Positions 1 through 56,568 of a DNA stretch of 64,000 bases are shown piece after piece. A program made the position numbers and the translations under genes. The stretch lies in NCBI GenBank assembly GCA_020891255.1, contig BQFW01000013.1, positions 868,001-932,000 of the forward strand. The letters run 5' to 3'. This DNA is from Entomortierella parvispora E1425 (lineage: Eukaryota; Fungi; Mortierellomycota). The notes below the pieces were generated by a model. That model did no database searches and had not been told where the DNA came from. It worked only from the letters and a program-made list of their open reading frames with translations. Each line of letters opens with the position of its first letter. Position 1 is the first letter of the stretch.

Positions 1-1197
1 CTACAGCGTCAGGGAAGCAAGAAAACAGTAAACAATCAGTAAATAAACGTTACAGATCATCGGTCAGTCATTTGCTTCCATCAATCACCCAGGGCTTTTG
101 CGTTCCCCCCCTGAGAATTGATTTTTGTTGTTCCTTACAGCGGTGGAGAGACGACTCGCGAGGTTCATTTCCAAGTTTCCTTTCAAGTTCAGAAGGATGG
201 GTATCAGGATAATGAGCTCTGAAATCTCGATGAACACTGGCCAATGCTGTCATATCATAAATAAAGGAAACGAATTGGGTCAGCTCTCTTTTACAATTCT
301 AAGCAGCCATACACATCGTTGTTCCAGATGCAATTGCACGAGATAATCGAGCCCTACCTGAACTTCATCTAACAGCCAGCCTGCACAAATCAATCCACTG
401 ACAGCGATCACAAGGGTCGTCGATGCCTATCATGACAAGTGTCCAACGGAGAAAAGTTTAGCGAAAAAGAGTCTCTTCTCGAGCCCAGTCCCTGTGAGAG
501 CCGAGTCTTTTTCCTTTTTTCTTCATTTCTTGAGTTTGAGCGCTTAATCCAATCCAATTCCTTGGAGAAGCTCCCCTCGTGCCTGTTCGTGTCACAAAAA
601 TAACACAAACGACGATTGTTTACGTCGCTCCCTCTGAAGAGAGAATTCACTCACCTGCATCCACAGACCCTTCTCCGAACTGTCGTCCGTGCCTACAGCA
701 TCCGAGCTACCGCCCATAATCTGGCCACGTTCCTCGTCCTCAAAGTGATAACTATCCCTGTCATGGCCCGGTTCTGAATATTCAAAGCTCTCGGGTCGAC
801 CCTTCTTGAGCGGGTAGGAAGAATCTGGGTCATGAACCGACTCGCCGTCGTGGACAGAGACGATGGTGCTCTGACTGTCGCTGGCTGGATCGGACGCGGG
901 ATGAACAAAGCCATCGGCATGATGATCAAATTCCTGGTCGTCCGAGTCACTGTCGCCACCGAGGGTATGTTGAGTAGGCTGGTGGTTCATGGAAAAGGAG
1001 GTGGTTCGTGTCCTCTGTCGGTTGTTTTGGGATTGCTGACGGGAAGAGTGTGGTGAGGAAGACGGCGGATGACTACTAGAGTCTGGATCGAGGTCGTCTT
1101 CGTCCTGCGTTAGGTCTTGGGAGTGACGAGAGTTTAAAAGAGGGGTGTAAGATGCCTGGGCAAAGGAAGGCCCCGCGGAGGAGAGTAACCTTGACAT
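1..1197 (-). CDS. SLC41/MgtE-family divalent cation (Mg2+) transporter, 5' part; gene continues off the left edge
   Basis: Exons 1197-655, 426-358 and 246-139 are joined by GT-AG introns in phase 0, and the third intron ends exactly at base 1. The spliced product has an acidic disordered N-terminus, then [59 protein letters not shown]. This matches the SLC41 signature P-x-LLGLKGNLEMTLASRLST. Confidence 0.85.
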
Positions 1198-36787: not shown

Positions 36788-39700
36788 TTACTCCTTGACC
36801 TCATCATAGACAGAGTCACCGCAGGTGCGCATGCGCTGCATCTCGAGCTCAGAGCTGTTCTCGAGGCACAAGGGCTTCATGACGTTGCGCTTGATCATCT
36901 TGTAGATCTCGGCAAAGGCAATGAAGATGAAGACGGCGGCGACGACGAAGCCCCACTCGTAGGTCAAGCCAGAGTGCTTAAAGACGTTGCGGTTCAAACC
37001 GGGGATATAAAGCATGGGGAAGACCAAGAGAACACCGACAATGATCGACAACCACAACATGCGGTTCTGGCGCAAAGTAGACAAGTTGGCGCGGGACCAG
37101 CCAGGCTCGCGAAGGGAACGGCAGTTGATAGCGTGGGCCAAGATCAACAAGGTCAAGCAAGCATAGGCGGTGGCACGGGCCTTGAAGACACCCTCGCACG
37201 CCTCAGAGTAGTGAGCATTGCACTCGCTACCCAAGTTGCCGTGGTTGAAGCCAAAGATGACGATGCAGAAGTTGGCGAACGAGAGAGCACCCATGGCAAG
37301 ACCATAAATAAAAGTATCCATGATGACCTCGAAGGAGAAGAGACCCTGCTTGGCGGAACGAGGGGGCTCACGCATGTTGGAATCACTTGGAGGCTCGAGA
37401 CCGAGACCCATGGCAGGAGGAGAAGAGGTGATCATGTTCAAGAACAAAATCTCGACGGCACTCATGGGGAAGACGGCGTTGCCATCCGAATCCTTGAAGG
37501 CCAAACCAATAATCAAGACAACAATCTCAGCCACGTTGGCAGACATGAGATGCTGGACAAACTTCTGAATGTTGGCAAACATACGACGACCCTCGGCAAC
37601 AGCCTGGACAATGGTGGCAAAGTTATCGTCCGTCAAGACAATATCGGCGGCCTGCTTGGCGACATCGGAACCAGACTGACCCATGGCAATACCGACGTTG
37701 GCAGCCTTGAGGGAAGGAGAATCATTGACACCGTCACCAGTCATGGTGGCAAAGAGATCACGGCGATGGAGGGCAGCGATCATCTTGACCTTGGTGTTAG
37801 GAGAGCAGCGGGCAACGACACGGGGCAACTCGGCCAAGGCATCAATTTCCTCCTCGGACATGGCATCGAACTGACCAGCAGTCATAATCAAAGGGTTGTT
37901 GACAACGTTGACATCCTCGGGAATGATGGCAACCTCCTTGGCAATGGCAGCAGCAGTCGAGGGATGGTCACCAGTCAACATGTGGACACGGATACCAGCC
38001 TCGTAACACTTGAGCACAGCAGGGCGAGACTCGGCACGGGGAGGATCGTAGATACCAACGAGACCCAAGAAAACCATCTCGGACTCGACCTCGTCACGGT
38101 TCAAACCGTGGACAAGATCCATACCGGGCTTGGCATGGAACTTGCGGTAGGCCAAGGTCAAGACACGGAGACCGCGCTCAGCGAGAGCGTTCATCTTCTC
38201 GGTGATCATAGCCTCGAACTCGGCACGGCCAGAACCCTTCTCACCTCCGAGGCTGAGCTCGTCATCGCCGCTGCGCCAGTAAGTGCAGCAGGGGAGGACA
38301 CGCTCGGTAGCACCCTTCATGAAGATGAGGTGCTCACTAGCGGGGGACTTGTAAAGGACAGACATACGCTTGACAGAGGAATCAAAGGGGAACTCGGCAA
38401 TCAAATCAAAGCCAGACTCGACCAAAGCGGGCTTGGACAAGCCAGCCTTGTAGGCAAGGACCTGGAGGGCAATCTCAGTGGGGTCACCAATGGCAGTCCA
38501 CTCGCCGTGGTCGGGGTTCTGGGTACGACGGAGCTCGGACATGTTGCAGAGTGAAGCAGCCTGGATAGTACGAAGGTAGTGGTTGGTGCCGGAGCCGATG
38601 GGGACCTGCTCCTCCTGGGCCAAGAACTCGCCGTTGGGGGCAGTCTCTCCCTGGCAAAAGATATCACCCTCGGGAACGAAACCGGTACCAGAGATGCGGT
38701 AGAAACCATCCTTGGGGAACCACATGCGAACAGCCACCATCTTGGATTGGGTCAAAGTACCGGTCTTGTCAGAGCAAATGTTGGTCACAGCACCGAGAGA
38801 TTCGAGGGAAGACAGACGACGGACAATGGCCTTGACTTCGGCCATACGGGAGACACCAAAGGCCATGGTCAAGGTGACGACAGCGACGAGACCCTCGGGA
38901 ATAATAGCAATGGCGACAGAAATGGCATAGATGGCAGTCTCGTTGGAGTACTTGAAACCGTGGACGGCAAAGACAATCAAGACCAGGATCAAGGCAGCCA
39001 GGAAGACAAAGTAGGCCATACGGTTCAAACGCTTCTGGAGAGGAGTCTGCTCGTTGGCGTCAACGTTCATCAAGGTGGTGGCGATCTTTCCAATCTGAGT
39101 CTTCATACCGGTGTTGGTGACGATACCCTTGGCACGGCCCTTGACGACAGTGGTCGAGGCAAAGACCATGTTCAAACGATCACCCAAGGCCTCATCGGCC
39201 TTCTCAATGTGCTCCAAATTCTTCTGGACGGGGAGGGACTCTCCAGTCAACAAGGCCTCGTCGGTCTCGAGGTTGAAGACCTCAAAGAGACGGCAGTCGG
39301 CTCCGACAACATCACCATCCTCAAAGATCATCACATCGCCGGGAACGGCCTGGTTGTTGGGAATCGTCACACGGGCCTCATCACGAATGACCTGGGCAGT
39401 AGGGGAAGACATGTTACGGAGAGCCTCCATGGTCTGCTCGGCGTTGAACTCTTGCCAGAAACCAATAGCGGCGTTCATAACAATAATAAACAGAATAACT
39501 CCTCCCTCAGCGAAATCCTTGGTAGCGAAAGCAAGAGCCTGCGCAAAAAGGATGAGGAATGAAGGATTAATAGCTGATACTTGACAGTTGTGGGGGAATG
39601 AGATCAAGAGCAAAGAAAAGAGAAGAGGGCTGTCATATGTACCGTGGCGATCAAGAGAATGACGACGAGAGCGTTGGCGACCTGGCGCCAAAGGACTTTG

Positions 39701-39879
39701 TACCATTTGACACCACCGTCTCCCTGGAGCTCGTTGCTGCCATACTGCTTCAAGCGAAGGGCAGCCTCGGCAGAGGAAAGACCCTGGATAGAGCTGGTGG
39801 CGTAGTGCTCTTCAGTCTGTGCGACCGAGAAGGTGTGGAAGGGCGTCTCGGGTTCGAGATCGACGACTTGTTTACCCAT
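36788..39879 (-). CDS. ENA1: P-type IID Na+/K+ efflux ATPase (ENA/Cta3-like), about 995 aa
   Basis: Exons 39879-39643 and 39538-36788. Motifs include LTGES, IIPEGLVAVVTLTM, ICSDKTGTLT, KGATE, MLTGDH and TGDGVNDSPSL. Family is clear, but orthology to a specific ENA paralogue is not established. Confidence 0.93.
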
Positions 39880-41280
39880 GACAGCGTAGAAGAGTGGTTG
39901 GTTCTTTTTTTTTCAATATGGGAGGGACAATGTGAGAAAAAAAAATGAGTAAAAAAAAAGAGTGTGGGTGACAACTGCTTTTTTTTTTAGTGAGAAAGAG
40001 TGGGGGATGGAAGGGAGCGGGTGGATGTAGACAAGGAGGAAAGGAAAGAAAAGAAGAAAAAAACAAGAGGTGAGGAGGAGGGGAGGGTATTTATTTGCTG
40101 AGTAGAACCAGAGGCCTCAGCGCGTTTCTATGGAGGGTAGCAGGATAAAAAAAGAAGGGCGGAAATCCAAGAAGAGAGCCGACGGGCAGATCCAGGGTCA
40201 GAGTGACATACGAGAGAGAGAGAGAGAGACTAGTCCTCGGCCAAGTCTCTCTTCCAGGAACAAAAAGAAAGACCGTGGGGGCCCTTTTGGCCCGCGCAAC
40301 CGAGCGAGCGAGTCGCTGGGAATGAAAAGCACCGAAATGAATCGAGCGCACAATGAGCCAACAAATCGGTACGGCTACGTACACGCATGCCGACTGTCCG
40401 TACGTGGGCCATGTCTCTCTTTTCCTTCCCGCCGTTCGATTCCATCGTTTCTTCTGGCGTGTCTTGGTCCATCGAGTGCCTCCTCGAATCGCAGGCCGGG
40501 GCCGGGCGGCGTGCGCACATGTACCTTTTCTCGCTTACTCTTTCTCCCTTTTTCGATTCTCATCATCATCGTAAAACACGCACGACTTGTGCTTCACAAA
40601 CAAAACAAATTGATCGATGGGCGGGGGCTGGACTACATGCCGTGCGCAACAAGAGATTGGCATCGCTATATGTAGGGTTCAGAAAGAAAAAAATCGACTC
40701 GGTTTCATGTTGCTCCGGAAGAGTCCAGGGACGATCGTCTCCTTCCCTTTGGGTTCACAACCACTGTCGCCATCGACTCTTCAATTTGTCTGTACTCTGG
40801 ACTTTCCGACAGATCTCAAATCTCAGTTGCAGATTTCCCATGAAGCCCCTCTTTGGAGGGAAAGCAGGGGCAAGATCTCCCTCCTCTTCTATTTTGTTTT
40901 GAGTGTCTGCTGGACATTCCTGGGAATGTTCACGGTGAGGTCCTCTGGCCAATGGTACTCGACACAGCACAATTTGACTTTGATTGTCACACAGACTCAG
41001 TCAGTCGAATCTTCCCTTCCTCCTCTTCATCATCATCCTTCTTTGAAGTCTGGTCGCGTGAGGACCCATCGTTGTTCCGCTCTTCCGCCCACTCCCTCAT
41101 CTTCACTCTGGTCTGGCTCTTCCATCCTTGCTCCTCTGTCCAACTTAAAAAAGGCAATGATGATGCTCCTCCTACTGTCGGCGTGGGAGAATAAATGATT
41201 CAAACATTGACTTCAATTGGGCGAGCGACATTGATTGTAAAGTTTTTTTTTCTTTTTTAATGCTTCTTTGAATGCAAAGA

Positions 41281-45298: not shown

Positions 45299-47334
45299 CT
45301 AGCTCAAATCCAACCCTGTGCCGTCAATCAAGTGTCGAATCATGACCAAACTGTTGAAGGGCTGGTCCATGGGCGTATAGTGACCTCCGCCCCACATGAC
45401 AATCCGGGTCAGTCCACTTCCATCATCACCACCAGAAGCCTCTGCCTCTACGTCCTTCTCTTTTGTTTCCACCTCCTTCTTTGTCACGCCTCCGGCTGGT
45501 GCGCTGTTCACATACCCAGCCACGAATCCATTCACCTTCCAAATCCTTCTCTTTGATTTCAAGAACGCGTCCTTTCCTTCCCAATCCAAGCCCTCGATCC
45601 ACGGTGTCGATCCAGCTGGTGGGTCCCTGACATCAAACATGCCCTGATAGGCCAACACCTTGACTTTGTTCTTCAAAAGATCTCCCACCAAGGGCTTGGT
45701 GCTCCTCATGATATCGCCTCGCATTGCCTGCTTGACCTGAGGATCCGTCTTGAACTTTGTTTGTTCTCTGCCTTTCTCGATCGCCTGAATTTGTTGATTT
45801 GAGAACCGACTTGGGTTGTTTTTCATATAGGAAGTGCGAGGGCCGTAAATGTTCAAGCTGTCCTTGGTTTTGGGCAAGTTCAAAAACTGATCCATAAGAC
45901 GCCAGTTCATGGGGTGCGATCCTTTCCGGATATCAAACGTGTTGAGCTCGGTCGCATTTCGGAACATGTTGAAGATCTTGCCACGGTATCTGTTCGCTTC
46001 CAGGAACTGTCCCTTTTCCACCAAGGAGACGGCCGAGCGCTGATGTTCTTTCATCAACTTCCATTCGTCCGAGGTCAAGAGGCCCAGGTAATAGGCTTGG
46101 TCGGCATAGTACTGGATCTGAGTGATGGGGTCCGTCATGGAGTTTCCGAGCGAGAGGCCTTTGATGGGGATCACGGCCTTTTTGGGTGTCGGAAACGCGG
46201 ATGTGGCAACTGGGGACGGGTCCTCCTCGGCAAGGTCCTTTTGACTGTAGCGTTTGTTTCTCTCCATGATAGCATGGGCGATCGAGGGCACGAATTTTCC
46301 GGCGTAACTTTGTCCTGCAATGTAGAGATCCGCCTTGAGTTGTTCTGGATACCGCTCATAAAACTGATCCAGTACAAAGAGCATGTCCTGGACGACTCCG
46401 GCCTCGTCCTTCACAAATCCGCCCTCTGTAAAGCTAGACGAGTTTTGCTGTTGACGGTCCTGTTTACTGGCCAGAGATTTGGCATAGAACGACTGGTCAG
46501 GCGGGAGGCTGGAGAAGAATGCCGATTCACGCTCCTGATCCTTTTCTAATTCTCTATCCAGATCATCTTTGGAGCGCGTTTCCTTCTCGTCTTCATCGTC
46601 GTCGCCATCGTCGTCATTGTCCTTATTTTTGGAACCCTTCTTCTTCTTCTGTGCATCGCCATTGTCCACGAAACTGAATCCTGTGCCCACGGGCTGATCA
46701 ACAAAGAGCATCGAATATTCCTCCGCCCAGGTGTTGTTGTTCCGGGCCAGCTTCATGTTGTCCGTCATCTTGATCGGTCCGTTTTCGTAAAAAAGTCCAA
46801 TCATTGAGCTACTTCCAGGACCTCCCTGGAGCCATCTTTATATTTGAAAAAAGAGCAACAAAAGCCGTTAGGGCACTCTTTATGTAAAAAGCATCACCCT
46901 CCTCCAGTCTCCAATGCAAACTTACATGATCAAAGGTGGGTTTTTGACCTTGGGCTTGATGGCAGGAAAAAACCAGTAGAATCTAGTACGATCAAGCAGA
47001 TGAGAGACTTGGCATCAGAACAACCACAGCAATAACCCAAAAGCGCGCGCACGAGAAAGACTCGGTCCTCATCTTACGTGCGGGCATCGCCCATCTTGCC
47101 GTCTTTTAGTTTCCACTCTCGGGTTTGAAGATGACCCGCGTAGCTCTCCTGAATGGGCGTCTGCCCCTTATCCCATGGCAAGGGTCCAACGCGTTGTTCT
47201 TGTCGATCGTATGTCATCGCCGCTACCCCTGCGTGAGCGGCCGATGTCAAGAGAATAAACGACGGGGGCGAGGAGAATGAGGAGGCCAGGAGAAGGGACA
47301 GTGGCAGCGCACTGAGGATCGTCCTGCACATCAT
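45299..47334 (-). CDS. Secreted serine carboxypeptidase, family S10
   Basis: Exons 47334-47078, 46982-46926 and 46835-45299. Signal peptide, [50 protein letters not shown], catalytic Ser motif GQSYAGKF and His motif GGHYTPMDQP. Confidence 0.92.
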
Positions 47335-48974
47335 TTGGATCCGGCAAAGGGCGGACGTGCGTGGATTGAAGTTTGTGAAAGAGAAGAAAGAGAAACAAAG
47401 AGGAAGGCGAGAGACCAGAGAGATCGGGGCAGAACTGAGGACGACAGATCGCATGGAAGCGAAACAATAAAAAAAAAAATGGTCTCTCGTGTTTTTGGTG
47501 GCGATGAGCGTCGTTCTGATCCATCCACATGTCAGCCTCTCGTCACTGAATTTCGGCACATTGGTCGTGATGCTGTTCGCACAACAGACATCCATCTCTC
47601 TCCCTCCCTCCCTCCATTTCTCTCCCTTCCTCCCTCCCTCTCCCTCTCTCTCTTCCCTCGACAACGAGGGAAAAAGTGTGCTGCGTGCTGATCTCGAGCA
47701 GGGACAGGGTGGTGATGGGCAAGAGACACACAGGCGCAGCTCTTTCTTCCCTCTTTCTCGCCCTTTGCACTGCACCCTTGGCCGTGTTTGCCAATAAAAG
47801 AGGCTCACGGCCGCTACTATTATTCAACAATTGCCCCTCAGTAAAGCTATATAGTTCCTCTGGGTGGACGTCTTAATCAGACGGCTGTCAAATATCTCGT
47901 ACCTGGATAACAGAGTTTCAACAGCACGGAGCTCCACATGTCCACTTCGTGCTATGGACAAAACTTTTCAGTGGACGAGCCTATGTAGAAAAACAACAGC
48001 GACGCTAGCCAAGTTGTGGTTAGCAGTGAGCGACCATGCCCCTGAAGTAAGAATGACTGGTCGCAACGTGAAAAGTCCTGCAGCGACAACATGACCGTCC
48101 CAGGGAGCAGCGACTGCTTGACTTGGAGGTCCGATCGGATAACCGCTTTGTGAAGGAGACAATGACAGACAGTTGGACACCACCTCACCCTCAGTAGTCT
48201 AGCAAAGAACATCCACGATCTTGAATTGCTTGGCATCGAAACTCAAACTCCCTTGTTGCTATGGACGGAATCCAAGTTGGAGTTCTGTCGCGTAGTGCCG
48301 TCTACGCTACCCAGAACACCTAATCTGCAGACGAGGACTCGCTGCTTCTACGACGGCCTGGAGGGTACTGGACCTCAATGGCCCAACTCAAGAGTGGGGT
48401 TACGCAGAGACCTCGCCGCGCCTCGAGCTTCCCATCGAACTTTTATATCCCGTTGTCGACAGCATTTTTTCACCGTCTGTTGTCGGGTATTGCTCAAAAA
48501 CGAGACGGTGCCACTGCGAGAGGATGAAGAGTCGTCCATTCATCCAACAATTGTGCAGCTTAGGCCAGCCCGACTCTATTGTTGGTTGGTCTTGTCACTG
48601 ATCATCTCTCCCTGTCTGACACTGCTGCATGCCCGAGTGTCAACAATGGGTCGCATCCCGTTCGCAGTTGATTGCCGCACGTTCCAAAAGAATCCGGAAA
48701 AAAATCTAGAATTTCATCAATTGTTGTTCGTTGCAAAGTTTCCCTTCTTTATGTATTTCTGGTTGTGCTGTCGTATAACTGAGAGTATCGTTATATTATT
48801 GCGATGGAAACCTTGGTTACAATTGAAACAAATCCTTAAGCCACGATAGAGGGAGCTATGATCAAAGGATTTCGTCTTGGGGTGATTGCTAACAAGCCGC
48901 CTTGAATAGATATAAGATGGACAAACTCAGTGAACTCGGTACAACTGAACTGAAGTCGCAACCTGCATTCAATA

Positions 48975-49005
<31 letters not shown>

Positions 49006-49073
49006 TGACATGGAATAAAGCGAAAACATACAGTCCAGACTCCGCCAGTATACCAGCCCTGGGAGTGACCAAC

Positions 49074-50539
49074 CTATTTTTTGCTGGAAAATTGATTGAC
49101 CAGAGAGGAAGAGAGGAATAAGGTCATCATGTTAGTTACAATCTTGCAATTGCAATTGTCATGTCTTCGGCGTTATGAGCAATTAGTAGGATTGTCTTAC
49201 AGGCTGATTAAGAAGAAAAGAAACACCAGGGAGAAATACAGGTGGCCATGTTAGTTCCAATGTGGCGATTGTCATGTCTTCGTCGTTATGAGCAACTAGC
49301 AGACATGACGTACTCGCTGATTGAGAAGAACAGAAACACCAAGGAGAAATACAGGTGGCCATGTTAGTTCCAATGTTGTGATTGTCATGTCTTCGTCGTT
49401 ATGAGCAACTAGCAAACTTGACGTACATGCTGATTGAGAAGAACAGAAACACCAAGGAGAAATACAGGTGGCCATGTTAGTTCCAATGTTGCGATTGTCA
49501 TGTCTTCGTCGTTATGAACAACTAGCAAACCAGACGTACTCTCTGATTGAGAAGAACAGAAACACCAAGGATAAATACAGGTGGCCATGTTAGTTCCAAT
49601 GTTGCGATTGTCATGTCTTCGTCGTTATGAGCAACTAGCAAACTTGACGTACATGCTGATTGAGAAGAACAGAAACACCAGGGAGAAATACAGGTGGCCA
49701 TGTTAGTTCCAATGTTGCGATTGTCATGTCTTCGTCGTTATGAGCAACTAGCAAACTTGACGTACGCGCTGATTAAGAAGAACAGAAACGCCAGGGATAA
49801 ATACAGGTGGCCATGTTAGTTCCAATGTTGCGATTGTCATGTCTTCGTCGTTATGAGAAACTGACAAACTTGACGCACGTGCTGATTGAGAAGAACAGAA
49901 ACACCAGGGAGAAATACAGGTGGCCATGTTAGTTCCAATGTGGCGATTGTCATGTCTTCGTCGTTATGAGCGACTAATGGGTTTGTCTTACAGGCTGATT
50001 GAGAAGAACAGAAACACCAGGGAGAAATACAGGTGGCCATGTTAGTTCCAATGTTGCGATTGTCATGTCTTCGTCGTTATGAGCAATTAGAAAACTTGAC
50101 CTACTCGCTGATTGAGAAGAACAGAAACACCAAGGAGAAATACAGGTGGCCATGTTAGTTCCAATTGTGCGATTGTCATGTTTTTGTCGTTATGAGCAAC
50201 TAATGGGTTTGTCTTACAGGCTGATTGAGAAGAACAGAAACACCAGGGAGAAATACAGGTGGCCATGTTAGTTCCAGTGTTGCGATTGTCATGTCTTCGT
50301 CGTTATGAGCAACTAGCAAACTTGACGTACATGCTGATTGAGAAGAACAGAAACACCAGGGAGAAATACAGGTGGCCATGTTAGTTCCAATTGTGCGATT
50401 GTTATGTTTTTAATCGACTGCTGGTGTTCATCCAGAGGCACCTGTAGTCTTGCGCTTTCCTATTCTATTCAACTTACGTTGGAGCAGCAATTGTTAGACC
50501 TAGAAAGGCAACAAGGACAAGAAGGAATTCGATTTTCAT
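49074..50539 (-). CDS. Predicted micro-exon gene: signal-peptide exon, eleven 3-nt exons and a short terminal exon, encoding a 34-aa secreted peptide precursor
   Basis: Exon 1 is 50539-50478 (MKIEFLLVLVAFLGLTIAAP + AC, then GTAAGT). The 3-nt exons start at 50333 CAT, 50220 CCT, 50107 CGA, 49994 CCT, 49881 CAC, 49768 CGC, 49655 CAT, 49542 AGA, 49429 CAT, 49316 CGA and 49203 CCT. Each is flanked by AATCAG and GT-R-N-G. The terminal exon is 49083-49074 (C AAA AAA TAG). Product: MKIEFLLVLVAFLGLTIAAPTILDLTAIDIDLKK. No transcript evidence available. Confidence 0.7.
49128..50410. repeat. Tandem array, period exactly 113 bp, about 11.5 copies
   Basis: The marker AAATACAGGTGG begins at 49234, 49347, 49460, 49573, 49686, 49799, 49912, 50025, 50138, 50251 and 50364, with every spacing 113. 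About 85 nt per unit are near-invariant and about 25 nt are variable. Confidence 0.98.
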
Positions 50540-50643
50540 TGAAATGTGGTTGGAGCTTAAGTTTGTTTGAAGTAGTTTGAACAAGGTCAAGATGGAGGGG
50601 AAGATGTGGATCATGCGACGGTCGTGGCAAAAGAAAATGGTGG

Positions 50644-50651
50644 TATTTAAA
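50644..50651 (-). promoter_or_regulatory. Candidate TATA-like element for the micro-exon gene
   Basis: Minus strand reads TTTAAATA about 105 nt upstream of the ATG at 50539, followed by a C/A/T-rich leader. Confidence 0.3.
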
Positions 50652-51479
50652 GGGCTCAGAGAAAAGAAAATGTCAGGGATGAAGATCAAAACTGGCATTG
50701 TTTTTCAGGAGATGATCAAAGGGGCAGGACTCCCCCTGTCCTTACTTTCTGGGAGGGAGCACTCAAAGGGGCATCTCCATGTCTTTACTTTCAGGGAGGG
50801 AGCACACAAGGTTAGATCACAGTCGTTCACTTTTACTCAGTTGCAGATGTCAGATTGCTGCAGCAAGCTGCTTTCCTTTTTTGTCAAAGAATGGTTGACG
50901 TCAACCGCTGGGTGTGGAGAGCATGAAGAACTCGATTTTGGGGCGCTGGAGTGTTCATTTGAAGCACTGGAGAATGGCTGGTGAGAGTGCGTCTTGTGTG
51001 TCTCTGTGAGTCTTCATTACTCCTTGCCGAGTTCTGACCATCATCCACTCAAAGCAAGCGTACCCTGGCGTTTCTCCATAAAAAAAAAAAAGTGGGGACA
51101 GGGAAGAGGGACAATGGGAAGACCTGCATCTCTTTTCATCATCATCATGCACACAGTGCACGTCAAGACACGTCCTCTACATGTACGCTGTTAAGAAAGT
51201 CGAGCTGTATGACTGGAAGGCGGCTTGTGGTTGTGTATCAACGGCACACCAAAAAAAAAAAAAAAAAAAAAAAAAAATAGATGGCGCCACCCGTTGCCGA
51301 TGGTTATGAGAATGGTCCTCCTCCTCCACATCTTTGCTCCCGCTCATGCTCCGCTTCAATGGTTGTCATTGCTGACTCGTACTTCAGCCTCACGCTGGAC
51401 ATCTTTCCCCTGAAAAAAACGGGGGGAAAGTGGCTGCGTGCTGATAATGGAGGACAGGACGGTGATGACAGAGGCATGG

Positions 51480-52087
51480 ATGACCTGCCTTGGGTGCTAG
51501 ACCTCACTGAATATACCCCACTCTCGACAACGAAAGTGAATTGTGAAGAGGCTTTTCATACGCAACCGCCAGCTCACGCGAGCCTGCATATCTATCAGGT
51601 GCAGGAGGGAGTTGATCGAGCTCACAAAGCATGCAGAGAGCTTGACCTGGGAGATTTGGCAGATTGATGGACAAGAGATTGATGGACAGGAGTTGAGCGA
51701 TCCGGGTTCAGATTCCAAGAGGGTGACCATTTCGGCGCCAAACGTCCCTTTTGTGAACTCGACTTTTCCAGTCAGAATCAAATCCAGTTGTTTAATTTGG
51801 ACTCGATGAAGAGATTCTTCGTGGACGACGATCAACCAACAGGATCTCCGTGTTTTCAAGTGTGGGCCTGGAGGTAGCCACTCTTGAGATGGAGGGTTAT
51901 TGGTCAGTGCCGTCTATCAGCGGCTTGGCCCTTGGTCAAACTCCAGTATCCGCTTCATAAAATGCAGATGACGCGCACTCTCGATCTTCGATGGATCGTG
52001 CATCGGATCGGCGTGCCTGAGCTAGAGTGGCTGAGCAAGCTTTGGCCAGATCTCTGTGCCCTATTTGGCCTGGCAGACCTACTCTAG
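51480..52087 (+). pseudogene. Second decayed LRR/F-box-type C-terminal fragment
   Basis: Family-like motifs are scattered over different frames: LPWV at about 51486, RELDLG at about 51635, and LHKMQMTRTLDLRWIVHRIGVPELEWLSKLWPDLCALFGL ending at the stop at 52087. This implies frameshifts. The assignment is from recall of motif shape, not a search. Confidence 0.45.
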
Positions 52088-52625
52088 GTGCTGGTCCGCT
52101 CCGTATCCTTAGTTCTGACCGTGCTGCTGATTGGGTCGTTCCTCCATCCACGCGAAGTTGGACGCAGTCACTATAGCTCTGCCTGTCCCCAATTCCTTTG
52201 TATATTTCTAGCTGCCAGTCGAATATACCTCCTGCGTATTTGCCAACCCCTCATTTGTTCTCTACCACACTGGCTTTCTACTATATATTTTTGAGGAGAA
52301 CAAAAAAAAAGTAAGTCTTTTCCGATCCATGAGGTGAGGTGGATGTGGTATGAGGTGATCGAAAGACATGGCACCTTTCAAAGCATTGAAAGGAATGAAG
52401 CATGAGCCACGTAGCTCGTGGAAACATGAGCAAGTCAAGAGGAGGAAGGCAATGTTCACGGAGGGATGAAAAATGAAAAAAAAAAAAAAAAAAAAAAGGA
52501 GGACGCTCTTGGACGCGCCAATACTTCGCGTCTATTTTTTGGTTTTTTTTTTTATTCTTTTTTTTTTTCTACAAATTCTCAGTTGCTTTTTGCTTTTTTG
52601 GACAGAGTATTTTTGAACGGGTAAA

Positions 52626-54998
52626 CTAGTTCAACAACAAGTGAATGGCGTGGGAGGGGACGCCATTGTTCAACATGTGGATATAGTGAGGACCTGGAGG
52701 CATGATGTTGGCGTTGGGGGGCATGTCGACCTCATAAGTGAACTTTGTGCCCGTGGTCGAGCTTCCTTCCTTCAAGGTCGCCACGAGCTTGGTCATCCTC
52801 TGGGACATGTGAGTGCTATGGGTCACAAACCCTTTGTGACCCAACATAAACACGACCTCAGGTTCGTACCGGCTCACGTCCTTCAGATCCACCACCAACT
52901 CGAGCTTTTGAGCATAGGTCACTGGCACGGGCTTGGCCTCGTTCGTCGTCACCTTGTTCTGGAAGAAACCCTCGGTCAAGACAATCTCGGGCCGGGCCAG
53001 ATCCGTGGTCAGGTAAGGGGGCGTGAAGGACTCGACTCTGTACTCGGTGGGGAAACGCACGTAGGGTCGCTGATGCAACGACAACTTGGTGCGTACCTCA
53101 CTGTTCTCGTTCGAACCCGCGACAAAGACAGAGCCATCGGGCAACAACATGGCCACAGAGTGATACATTCTGGCAATGTTGCTGGGGACCCACTCTGTGA
53201 AGCGGGAGCCCAGAGGTGCTTGAGGATCATAGATCAAGGGCGTAAAGTTGGGATCGTTGCCGTGCAAGAATCCAGCGAAACCGGTCTGGCAACCGTTGAG
53301 GAGCATGACTTTGCCATCGGCCAAGATGATGGCATCGCCCATCAAGCGACGACTGGGCATCTCGTCCATCTCCCATTGAGGGTCTGGGTCGGCCAAGTTG
53401 ATGCGTCCGCAGGTCTGCAGGGCCTTTGAGTTTTGTTCCATACGTTCCGATCCTCCACAGACCAAGATCTCGTGTGCGTAACCCTTGGCAGGGTCGAGGG
53501 GCAAGAGCACATGGGATCCCGTCAAGGGGTAGGAGCGAGGTCCTCCAGGGATATCGGGCAATCGACGGACGACCTCATTGCGGGCCACATTGAAAATCAT
53601 GGACTTTGTGTTGGCAAAGATATAAATGTCTCCACTGGGCAACGAGTAGACGTTGGGGTACAAGTTGTTGGGCAGAGCATCGACCATGAACTGCATGAAG
53701 TTGGGCTTGTAATCCGCGGCTGGCTTGGGCTTTGGGTACAACTCCCACGTTGGGTTATTGTACGCGTTCGCATTGATCGCCAAAGACTCGTTACTGCCTC
53801 CCAGGATAAAGAGCTCTCCAGAGGGCAGTGTCGTGATCGAGACGTACCAGCGGTTGCTCGTCATCATCCACTCGCGGTCGTTCGGGTTCTCGATCCATGC
53901 TCCACAATTCTCACCCTCACAGGGCAACCACATTCTCAAGGACTGGAAACCATCCTCGGGTCTGAAGGCCCTTGAGTTTCGAACCTCGGCACCTCCAGCA
54001 CTGATAAAAGTACCGTTGGGCAAGAAACCTCCACCAGAGCAAAAAGTGTTGGTCCTCACCTCCAAGGTTCGGAAGTCGTTTCGGGTCAGGTCGTACTCGG
54101 CATTGTAGGCCGAGAGACCGTTGGGGAGCTTGGGAGGGTTGGCCTCGGCCTTGTCAATGATCAACATCTTGGTCGGCGAGATCAAGACAATGTGTTGGGC
54201 CGCCACACCGGTCTGGCCCACGACCTTGAACGCTCCCTTGGGCAAGGAAGGGACGGGCTTGGGCTTTCCGCCGTTCGTGGTGATGTCGCTCAGGATGAAG
54301 CGTTCGCATCGACCATTGAAACTAGCTGATGCGTCACAGCCTGCGCTGCAGGCCAGAGGCGAATTGCCGCAGTGGCCATGCTACAGATAGAAAGGAAGGC
54401 GAAAGAAAAAAAAATATATAAATAAAAAAAGGCGTAGGGGTGGGGTGAGGTTGAGTATGAAATCGCGTGCAACGGAGAACAGGGCTGTGTGGGTGGTGTT
54501 GCACTGAGTTGATTTGTATTGTGACCAGACAGGCAATCAAGGCCAAATAGAAACAACACGAGAATGGGGTGTTGTTTTGTTCCGGGTATCTGGAATTCTG
54601 AGGGCGGTTGGTGGGATCAAGTCGCACTGTTACTGTCCGTTAGCCTCGAGGCAGTAGAGGCAGACGAGTTTGGAATATGACACAGTGCACGAGACGAATG
54701 GCGGAGGAATGAGATGCGAGCGTGTAAGGAATGCGCGGGGGGAGGAATGAGCAGGCGACAGTGTTTGAGGTGAGGGAACGTCGACGGTGGAGAGCGGGGG
54801 GACTAGAAGAAGGTAAAGGGGTCAATGGCTTACAGAACTGCAGCAGGGTGTCTCTTGCGGACATGCCAGTCCGTTGTTGTACTTGCAGCCTGCACCGTCG
54901 ACAGGGGCAACGACACAGACCGCAGACAGGACAAGGGCCGTCGTTGCCAGGAACCAGCCTAGCTTTCGGGTCATCTTGGTTGCAGAAATTATTGCCAT
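52626..54998 (-). CDS. Secreted copper radical oxidase (AA5, glyoxal/galactose oxidase fold) with an N-terminal hevein/CBM18-like chitin-binding module
   Basis: Exons 54998-54834 and 54380-52626. After a signal peptide, the junction-spanning sequence reads CPQETPCCSS|HGHCGNSPLACSAGCDASASFNGRC. AA5 active-site motifs are NTFCSGG (Cys), NRWYVS (Tyr), RMYHS (Tyr-His) and THSTHMSQR (His). Confidence 0.9.
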
Positions 54999-56568
54999 AC
55001 GAGGAGGAGAAAGGAGGGGGGACAAGGGGAGGACAGGGTGTATGTAGGATGCGTTAGGAGGTGAGCGAATCGGATATTCTGTCAAACAGATCAGGGGCGT
55101 TAAAAGAGTGGATAGGGTAGCGGTAGGTGGCTCAATGGATGAAAGGGTTGATGGGAAGGTGTGTGTGTGTGTGTGTGCAAGATGGAGTAAAGTCGTAAGC
55201 GTGCGTGCGTGAATGCGTGAGTTGAGTAAAGCAAAGAGAAAATGAAGTTGAAAACGAAGAATGATGGAGAAGGAAAAGGTAAAGGCCGCCCGATCGTTCG
55301 CTCTTATATCCAAATCTGCCCTCCACTTGGGCGCAATGGGTGGGGTATGTGCCTCCTCCCTCATTTCGCTTCGTATCAGTCAGCACCCGGACCAGGTTCC
55401 ATATGGGGAGCCCCAATCTCTCTTGCAGAGCACTTCCTTCTCTCTCTGCCTGTCTGCCCTCATTCATTCACATACGCGCTCGCTCCAACAAGATTGCCAA
55501 CACCAGGTTTCATGCTCTCAGTGCTTGTTTTTTCCTTCATGTCCGAAGTCGGCGAGCAGAGGAGCAAAATTTTGCGCCCAATCTCCGTTTGCACGAAGAG
55601 AGACCCACCTCAGAGTTAAAAATATCTTTCGCATTTCCATAAGTGACCATCCCGCCTGGCTGGTGTCACACACATGTTCCTCAATATTGTCATGTCATTT
55701 GTGAACACACGTCAAGAAAAAAAAGATAACCATTGTTTATTCGTGGTGAAGCTGTGTCGCCGAGAGACGCATCCATGGAGTTGCTGCACGTTGCTGTCTG
55801 TCCGGCAGGGTAACAAAAGGGAAAGAGGTGGCAAAAACGAAAAAAAAAGAAGATAGAAATAGAAAAAAAAAAAATAGGGAAAGACATCTTCAGTTTTGTC
55901 CTGTCTTCTTTTTCCCTTGGCGCAAGTTTGAATCGGTGGTCACTGGTCGATATTCTTATCCCTGTGCCATCCATTCGTTATCCATAGTCGAATCCATGGG
56001 TCCTTGAATGCTGCGGACTTGCAGGGCAATTAACGGATTGAGGTCCACAGGGCCAAGAGGGCGAAGTAAATTCTCGATAAAAAGACTTGAGAGCAATCAC
56101 CGAGCCGCTGGGAGAAAAAAAAAAAAAAGAGCTGTAACCACGACGTATCGGCAGTTCTCCAGATGGTTGCAGGCAGACTGGTAAAAATATAGACTCTTCC
56201 ACTCCTCCTTCCTTGTTTCCTGCAGCTGAGAATGTCCAAGTGCTTGATTTTTTTGTCGTTTTTTTTTGTATGTTTTTTTTTTGGGTCCACGAACCAAGAT
56301 CCAGTGGTCTTTACTCTTGTATCCCTCATTGCTTTGTTGTTCCAAAGTCAACCTTGCGCCCAAAGCGAGAAAAGAAAAAGAAAAAAAATCGTGTAGGCTG
56401 GCGTCTCCACAGACAAAGAGCTGCAGCTGATAGGGTCTTGCCGCATGTCCAGTGGGCTGATCCTGTAAGGGTCATAAAAAAGTATTTTCGGGTTTTGGTG
56501 ACGAGTCCCTGGGTTCAACCTCTTGTCGGGCGTCGAAAAAAATAGAGTGCTCGGTGTCGTCACAGGTC

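Follow-up and report, generated by a model that had tools for sequence, protein, structure and literature searches.

The window analysed here is a 64,000-nucleotide stretch of the soil fungus Entomortierella parvispora E1425 (GenBank assembly GCA_020891255.1, contig BQFW01000013.1, positions 868,001 to 932,000 of the forward strand), in which a glyoxal oxidase-like gene (GLOX, 52626-54167) and a gene for an S10 carboxypeptidase (around 45299-47334) are the neighbours of a tandem array with a period of 113 bp. Tandem Repeats Finder reports 11.1 copies at 49150-50407, with 90% matches and 0% indels, and this array is the sole long-period repeat in the 64-kb window. An earlier note, made from the letters alone, had read it on the minus strand as a hidden micro-exon gene, in which introns of 110 nucleotides (nt) alternate with exons of 3 nt behind an exon encoding a signal peptide. 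The array, the predicted parts of the proposed gene and the segment that holds them are given below, in positions of the window.

47327-52506, no strand assigned: the 5.2-kb segment holding the array, between the GLOX and S10 genes; absent from two relatives, with no Pfam match and no coding-like open reading frame (ORF)
50644-50651, minus strand: putative TATA-like element TTTAAATA, recognized by sequence reading, 105 nt 5' of the proposed ATG and followed by a pyrimidine-rich leader
50478-50539, minus strand: proposed exon 1, comprising ATG, 20 codons and 2 nt, signal-peptide-like (MKIEFLLVLVAFLGLTIAAP) and followed by GTAAGT; codon usage non-coding-like
49150-50407, minus strand: the 113-bp tandem array of 11.1 copies; interior copies 88-99% identical to the consensus, edge copies 70% and 53% (ungapped)
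50334-50477, minus strand: predicted intron 1, 144 nt, GTAAGT...AACTAAC...AATCAG; the 113 nt at its 3' end form a diverged copy of the repeat, 70% identical to the consensus
49204-50333, minus strand: ten predicted modules, each a 3-nt exon plus a 110-nt intron
First bases of predicted micro-exons 1-5, minus strand: CAT 50333, CCT 50220, CGA 50107, CCT 49994, CAC 49881
First bases of predicted micro-exons 6-10, minus strand: CGC 49768, CAT 49655, AGA 49542, CAT 49429, CGA 49316
49084-49203, minus strand: predicted micro-exon 11, CCT (49203-49201), and last intron of 117 nt, GTAAGA...TAACTAAC...TTCCAG, a diverged edge copy
49074-49083, minus strand: predicted start of the terminal exon, CAAAAAATAG, in which C completes a Leu codon and is followed by Lys, Lys and a stop codon

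On the minus strand the string CAG-NNN-GT occurs eleven times at a spacing of exactly 113 nt, leaving exactly 3 nt between each acceptor and the next donor. Twelve introns are thereby predicted (one of 144 nt, ten of 110 nt and one of 117 nt), all of them GT...AG, with the eleven 3-nt exons between them. The donors of the eleven units are GTACGT (six), GTAAGA (three), GTAGGT (one) and GTGCGT (one), with G at position +5 in 11 of 11, and the donor of exon 1 is GTAAGT. An AACTAAC branch motif is present in 12 of 12 introns, its branch A lying 47-48 nt from the 3' end, and the tract from there to the acceptor is free of AG and 70-75% pyrimidine in every case; the acceptor is AATCAG in 11 introns and TTCCAG in one. 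All 12 units have the sequence characters of a spliceosomal intron, namely a donor of native type, a branch motif followed by a tract with no AG before that of the acceptor, and a size in keeping with native introns. Scripted joining of the 13 predicted exons (62 nt, eleven of 3 nt, and 10 nt) yields an ORF of 105 nt that encodes MKIEFLLVLVAFLGLTIAAPTILDLTAIDIDLKK*, a product of 34 amino acids. The 62-nt exon 1 (50539-50478) begins with ATG and runs without a stop codon into GTAAGT. In the predicted model the bulk of the mature coding sequence comes from short symmetric exons of 3n nt (eleven of them of 3 nt), and any pairing of a donor with an acceptor preserves the frame. The splice signals, the 3-nt spacing, exon 1 and the spliced product described in the earlier note were all reproduced.

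A reader in search of genes will preferentially report those satellites that can be read as genes, and the array might therefore be an ordinary satellite resembling introns by chance. We applied an intron test on either strand, with controls treated as tandem units, which required a GTRNG[TA] donor preceded by an AG that ends 3 nt before it, and a CTRAY motif 12-60 nt upstream of the AG with no further AG between. Of 20,000 dinucleotide shuffles of the unit 48 passed (0.24%), and of 20,000 random genomic 113-mers only 4 (0.02%); the latter number rises to 29 if spacings of 3, 6 or 9 nt are allowed. The regularity seen in 11 of 11 units does not amount to eleven independent observations, because the copies inherit their layout from one founder unit. 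For comparison with native introns we used the two introns of the S10 gene, of 95 nt (GTAAGA...CTAG) and 90 nt (GTAAGT...CCCTAACGG...AAAG), both from an exon-intron structure that is the single solution fitting the annotated product of 616 amino acids, together with one intron of 81 nt with a GTAAGT donor in the EST1 gene. The EST1 structure, when solved from the annotated protein length, has more than 200 solutions and was not used beyond this intron; native introns collected ab initio, either by ORF bridging or by means of a CTRAC motif, were too noisy and were not used. The S10 introns have a CTAAC branch, and the unit donors GTAAGA and GTAAGT and the CTAAC branch are those of these native introns. 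Since the controls so rarely pass and the signals match those of native introns, we conclude that the repeat unit is a true copy of an intron with 3 nt added, rather than a fortuitous resemblance.

Units encoding a structured or functional RNA, such as an intron-hosted small nucleolar RNA (snoRNA), would be another source of a regular intron array. However, the best Rfam match of the unit has E=3.9 (16 bits against a gathering score of 100), and on both strands the unit folds no better than its shuffles (z=+0.6 to +1.5). An intron array of the snoRNA-host type would be expected to show an Rfam match, or a conserved structure or box motifs in each intron, and neither such a match nor a structure was found in the unit. 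Chance resemblance and a small-RNA array are disfavoured, and we regard them as extremely improbable.

Elsewhere in the window, the N-terminal exon of a P-type ATPase (MGKQVVDLEPETPF...LLIAT, around 39610-39900, minus strand) seems to be followed by a donor of the sequence GTACAT, in which the base at +5 is A; if so, G at +5 is not universal in the genome.

The variation among copies is very unevenly distributed. The first 25 nt of the unit, namely the micro-exon and intron positions +1 to +22, show a pairwise identity of 73%, as against 96.4% in the other 88 nt, and the minimum number of changes per site differs seven-fold between the two parts. The donors do lie, as had been noted earlier, in the most variable part of the unit. 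Within this stretch, GT and the G at +5 are constant, whereas variation is seen at 19 of the 22 sites around them (Fisher p=0.009; Poisson P(0)=0.04), and over the whole unit 10 of 10 essential splice positions are invariant, compared with 31 variable positions among the other 103 (p=0.03). Where the donors do change, they do so in ways that a donor tolerates: from A to G at +3, from C to A or G at +4 and from T to A at +6. These results are moderate evidence that the donors are under constraint, to an extent greater than expected by chance. The interior copies have been homogenized by concerted evolution and the edges have diverged, since the edge copies are far more diverged than the interior ones. 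The two main unit types (49203-50333, first 25 nt) are distinguished by six consecutive transitions at intron positions +10 to +15 (GTTTGC versus ACCCAT) and by two donor transversions (GTACGT versus GTAAGA), a clustered difference in units that are otherwise almost identical.

Variability is greatest in the micro-exon itself, where it reaches a minimum estimate of 1.67 changes per site, compared with 0.94 in the adjacent intron stretch and 0.1-0.2 elsewhere. Such a peak would suit a functional, selected gene that resembles the micro-exon genes (MEGs) of Schistosoma; its spliced mRNA would encode a secreted peptide of about 14-16 amino acids (APTILDLTAIDIDLKK-type), and diversifying selection would act on its single-codon exons. 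The spacing of exactly 3 nt and a signal-peptide-like exon 1 are in keeping with such a gene, as is the frequency of C in third position, which is seen in 10 of the 11 codons that the first base of a micro-exon completes and in 9 of 11 codons born within the array, codons with a final C being common in native genes. However, the hypervariability is not confined to the codons: it reaches about 20 nt into the intron in the form of linked unit types, in which CCT is always accompanied by GTAAGA-CAAACCCATTAG and CAT by GTACGT-CAAGTTTGCTAG, and there is therefore no codon-only signal. Part of the micro-exon variation fits CpG decay, through transitions from CGC to CAC to CAT. The conserved C is a fixed base of the repeat, and thus gives no evidence of codon selection. 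No orthologue is found, the segment being specific to the species, and the codon usage of exon 1 and the in-frame ATGs upstream of it, both described below, also argue against a selected secreted peptide. We consider a selected gene of this kind unlikely.

The explanation we prefer is that the 113-bp module represents one spliceosomal intron of 110 nt, together with 3 flanking exon nucleotides, which was serially duplicated in tandem to give a young minisatellite. The array would be set in a species-specific, unannotated minus-strand transcription unit of E. parvispora. Fungal splicing probably recognizes short introns singly, and the native ones here, of 81-95 nt, point in the same direction. 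With the branch site 47 nt upstream of the acceptor, early spliceosome assembly would take place about 50 nt from the next donor, despite the 3-nt exon between them. The transcript may then lose the units one by one, until up to eleven 3-nt exons remain. Given the short native introns, the position of the branch site and the occurrence of 1-3-nt exons in fungi, such unit-by-unit loss would be expected. Each unit would add one codon, and growth or shrinkage of the array would never break the ORF. With one codon per unit and all pairings in frame, the array would be frame-neutral, and this neutrality would explain how a module of an intron plus 3 nt, rather than one of another period, expanded inside an ORF. 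From these sequence features we put the prospect that at least part of the transcripts are spliced unit by unit as evenly balanced; that such splicing, where it occurs, also yields a functional secreted peptide seems doubtful to us.

A transcribed array might instead be removed en bloc or in large steps, with the 3-nt exons rarely or never included and the transcript perhaps non-coding. Use of an acceptor may be hindered by the next donor, which follows after only 3 nt, and skipping would be without cost, all pairings being in frame. There is also a precedent in amphioxus, in which boundary duplicates of Adh3 and globin genes leave regular splicing undisturbed (PMC3087553). However, with native introns of 81-95 nt, recognition intron by intron is favoured over the removal of an intron of 1.4 kb. 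Every unit is equipped with a strong donor, a branch site and a first-AG acceptor, and fungi do splice internal exons of 1-3 nt. En-bloc removal appears quite improbable to us.

A number of observations, set out in this and the following two paragraphs, weigh against unit-by-unit splicing in an expressed gene. The first concern the genomic setting. The earlier note had expected gene finders to miss the locus, and it turns out that the public annotation, for which AUGUSTUS was used with RNA-seq-derived hints (PMC8759367), calls no gene between GLOX and S10. A stranded RNA-seq library from the same strain, of the RF type with reads of 2x150 nt, is described in the genome announcement (DRA013164; PMC8759367). 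The array lies within a 5.2-kb segment that is absent from two relatives, and it thus gives no sign of conservation. In Gryganskiella cystojenkinii the GLOX and S10 genes are 380 nt apart, and a closer relative, represented by a metagenome contig with 81-83% DNA identity around GLOX, has 242 nt between the points that align with 52507 and 47326. Because the gap between the two genes is so short in these relatives, the segment is, on the sequences compared, specific to the E. parvispora lineage. Mortierella sp. AM989 has neither the S10 gene nor the array, and the array is missing, with no long-period tandem repeats in its stead, at the loci of Mortierella sp. AM989, Gamsiella and Gryganskiella and in the contig of the closer relative. 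No copies of the unit or of exon 1 were found elsewhere in the 64-kb window, at the relatives' loci or in the JGI metagenomes. A metagenome scan with a two-anchor repeat pattern returned 28 loci, all of which were rejected as chance matches with no BLAST similarity to the array.

The second group of observations concerns coding potential. The N-terminus of exon 1 passes a crude signal-peptide rule, as do only about 1% of the ATGs in the window; its hydrophobic stretch is encoded by a T-rich tract. The G+C content at third codon positions (GC3) of exon 1 is 4/19 (0.21), compared with 0.64 in eight native genes (binomial P=1.7e-4) and with 0.84 and 0.68 in the native signal-peptide exons of S10 and GLOX, respectively. 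Its codon adaptiveness of 0.42 is below that of 99.9% of native 19-codon windows, and does not exceed that of the segment's non-coding ORFs (0.44-0.63). If the transcript starts further 5', the ATGs present in frame at 50698 and 50614 could lengthen the N-terminus and so bury the signal peptide. Without the array, the ORF would be reduced to the signal peptide plus three residues. In exact look-ups, neither the predicted peptide of 34 amino acids nor the one of 23 amino acids that direct splicing would give was present in a collection of about 15 billion proteins, and four metatranscriptome contig sets of relatives (80% likeness) gave scraps of 36-113 nt on S10 and none on the array.

The third group lies in the array itself. 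Copies that share 96% identity in the 88-nt part are young, and their intact signals could partly reflect youth rather than selection. Moreover, the low variation of this part, including that upstream of the branch site, is not accounted for by splicing constraints. These points bear on a further explanation, according to which the array is a fossil satellite, amplified between genes from a founder intron that had belonged to a gene fragment or to a transcript of brief existence; it would now lie outside any transcript, its signals being intact only through youth. A recent origin is also indicated by the complete lack of indels among the interior copies, and the segment is unannotated and without a coding-like ORF. 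The composition of exon 1 is non-coding, and a T-rich tract would be translated as a hydrophobic stretch anyway. However, the invariance of the donor core amid 19 of 22 varying sites is unexpected under neutrality (p around 0.01-0.04), and a complete unit is present, with a promoter-like element, an ATG, a donor and unique first and last introns. The exact 3-nt spacing is also left unexplained if there is no reading frame. On balance we regard a fossil satellite as somewhat unlikely.

In favour of a gene are the constancy of GT and of the G at +5, the N-terminus that passes the crude signal-peptide rule, and the layout, which includes unique first and last introns, an ORF starting with ATG, a TATA-like box and a stop codon immediately after the last intron. 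The claim of the earlier note that this is an MEG-like gene thus holds with regard to the bona fide intron copies and the gene-like layout, but is opposed by the codon usage of exon 1, which is non-coding-like, and by the absence of the segment from two relatives. A micro-exon gene is therefore plausible from the sequence, though unproven, and if real it would be a young orphan. In the same way, the 34-amino acid ORF is more likely to be a young orphan or a by-product than an established effector.

As to the 5.2-kb segment as a whole, none of ten ORFs compared with Pfam has a match, coding-like codon usage was seen in no ORF, and a search for terminal repeats found only homopolymer runs. The segment may have originated by insertion, as a transposon remnant or by de novo expansion. 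Some 190-270 nt 5' of the proposed ATG there is a direct repeat of 36 nt (50731-50766 and 50774-50809; 43 nt apart, with 86% identity), which may represent a promoter element, present in duplicate, of the putative transcription unit. Just 3' of the stop codon (48966-49016) a run of T gives way to one of about 14 G, and runs of A27 and A22 are present at 51251-51277 and 52475-52497, respectively. The lengths of homopolymer runs near the array may be inexact, the assembly of 38.7 Mb being Nanopore-based and polished; the contig of the closer relative (L002) passes from GLOX into S10 without these runs. With regard to GLOX itself, the annotated protein (513 amino acids) begins at an internal Met. 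In the region 54167-55364 on the minus strand, a signal peptide and a Cys-rich stretch (MTRKLGWFLATTALVLSAVCVVAPVDGAGCKYNNGLACPQETPCCS...) are encoded by an upstream exon, which an intron of about 430 nt joins to a second piece (HGHCGNSPLACSAGCDASASFNG...) that matches orthologues such as P0003 at their N-termini. The annotated GLOX model thus looks 5'-truncated.

If the array is spliced unit by unit, its eleven consecutive one-codon exons would form the most extreme micro-exon architecture that we have found described. It would also be a live example of intron multiplication by tandem duplication, a proposed route of intron gain that is rarely caught, and would illustrate how a repeat within a reading frame may expand with hardly any penalty. 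In addition, it would expose a blind spot, in that gene finders and spliced aligners cannot place exons of 3 nt. Should the locus be silent, it would still provide a clean case of an intron turned satellite. Beyond this locus, one may speculate that E. parvispora, and perhaps other Mortierellaceae, possess a gene class in which tandemly amplified introns alternate with single-codon exons, the present array being one expressed member. In such genes, minisatellite dynamics would add, delete or vary amino acids singly in small secreted peptides, with all pairings in frame. We offer this as a conjecture that is more probably wrong than right by a wide measure.

Several known systems resemble the array in part. 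In the 'mirage' minisatellites of amphioxus, which have been proposed as a route to new introns, an intron-exon boundary with AG/GT signals is contained in repeats of about 10-160 bp arranged in tandem (PMC3087553). As in the present array, the repeats span the boundary, the interior copies evolve in concert and the boundary copies lie outside the homogenization. However, the mirage unit contains one boundary only, whereas the unit here contains a whole intron plus exactly 3 nt. Furthermore, mirages are found in conserved, expressed genes and are ignored by splicing, as judged by reverse transcription-PCR; in contrast, the host locus here is an unannotated orphan, absent from relatives, and does not lie inside a gene of that kind.

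The introner-like elements of Dothideomycetes are scattered over genes that have no relation to one another, and stable folds are predicted for them (PMC4457414). They share with the present units the multiplication of near-identical introns of about 100 nt within a fungal genome. In contrast to them, the unit here is arranged in tandem, has no other copy in the 64-kb window and is unstructured; an introner-like element was rejected on the grounds that the array is tandem rather than dispersed in that window and that its fold has z=+0.6 to +1.5.

As to exon size, the long-read annotation of Coprinopsis cinerea contains 27 internal exons of 3 nt in 26 genes (bioRxiv 10.1101/2024.05.10.593147). 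The fungal spliceosome can thus join internal exons as short as those predicted here, but the Coprinopsis cases are single micro-exons in ordinary genes, and not tandem arrays of duplicated introns. The earlier note knew of no described fungal example, and this holds for a run of eleven such exons, which we did not find in the literature searched, but not for isolated exons of 1-3 nt, which are documented in C. cinerea. Full-text literature searches likewise returned no description, in fungi or elsewhere, of runs of single-codon exons between duplicated introns. To our knowledge, some 11 complete introns in succession, with single codons between them, have not been reported, either in a fungus or elsewhere.

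The MEGs of Schistosoma combine a signal-peptide exon with short symmetric exons (about 6-36 nt) separated by unrelated introns, and form expressed families with proteomic support. The architecture predicted here is similar in that a signal-peptide exon is followed by very short exons of 3n nt, the skipping of which keeps the frame. It differs in its 3-nt exons, in its near-identical tandem introns and in having no homology to MEGs. Lastly, introns are said to have been born from tandem arrays in human genes (Zhuo et al. in 2007), and intron creation by internal tandem duplication has reportedly been proposed by Rogers in 1989 and by Gao and Lynch in 2009. The present array shares the central feature of such intron gain, in which each repeat unit supplies both a 5' and a 3' splice site, and duplication of the unit thereby multiplies introns.

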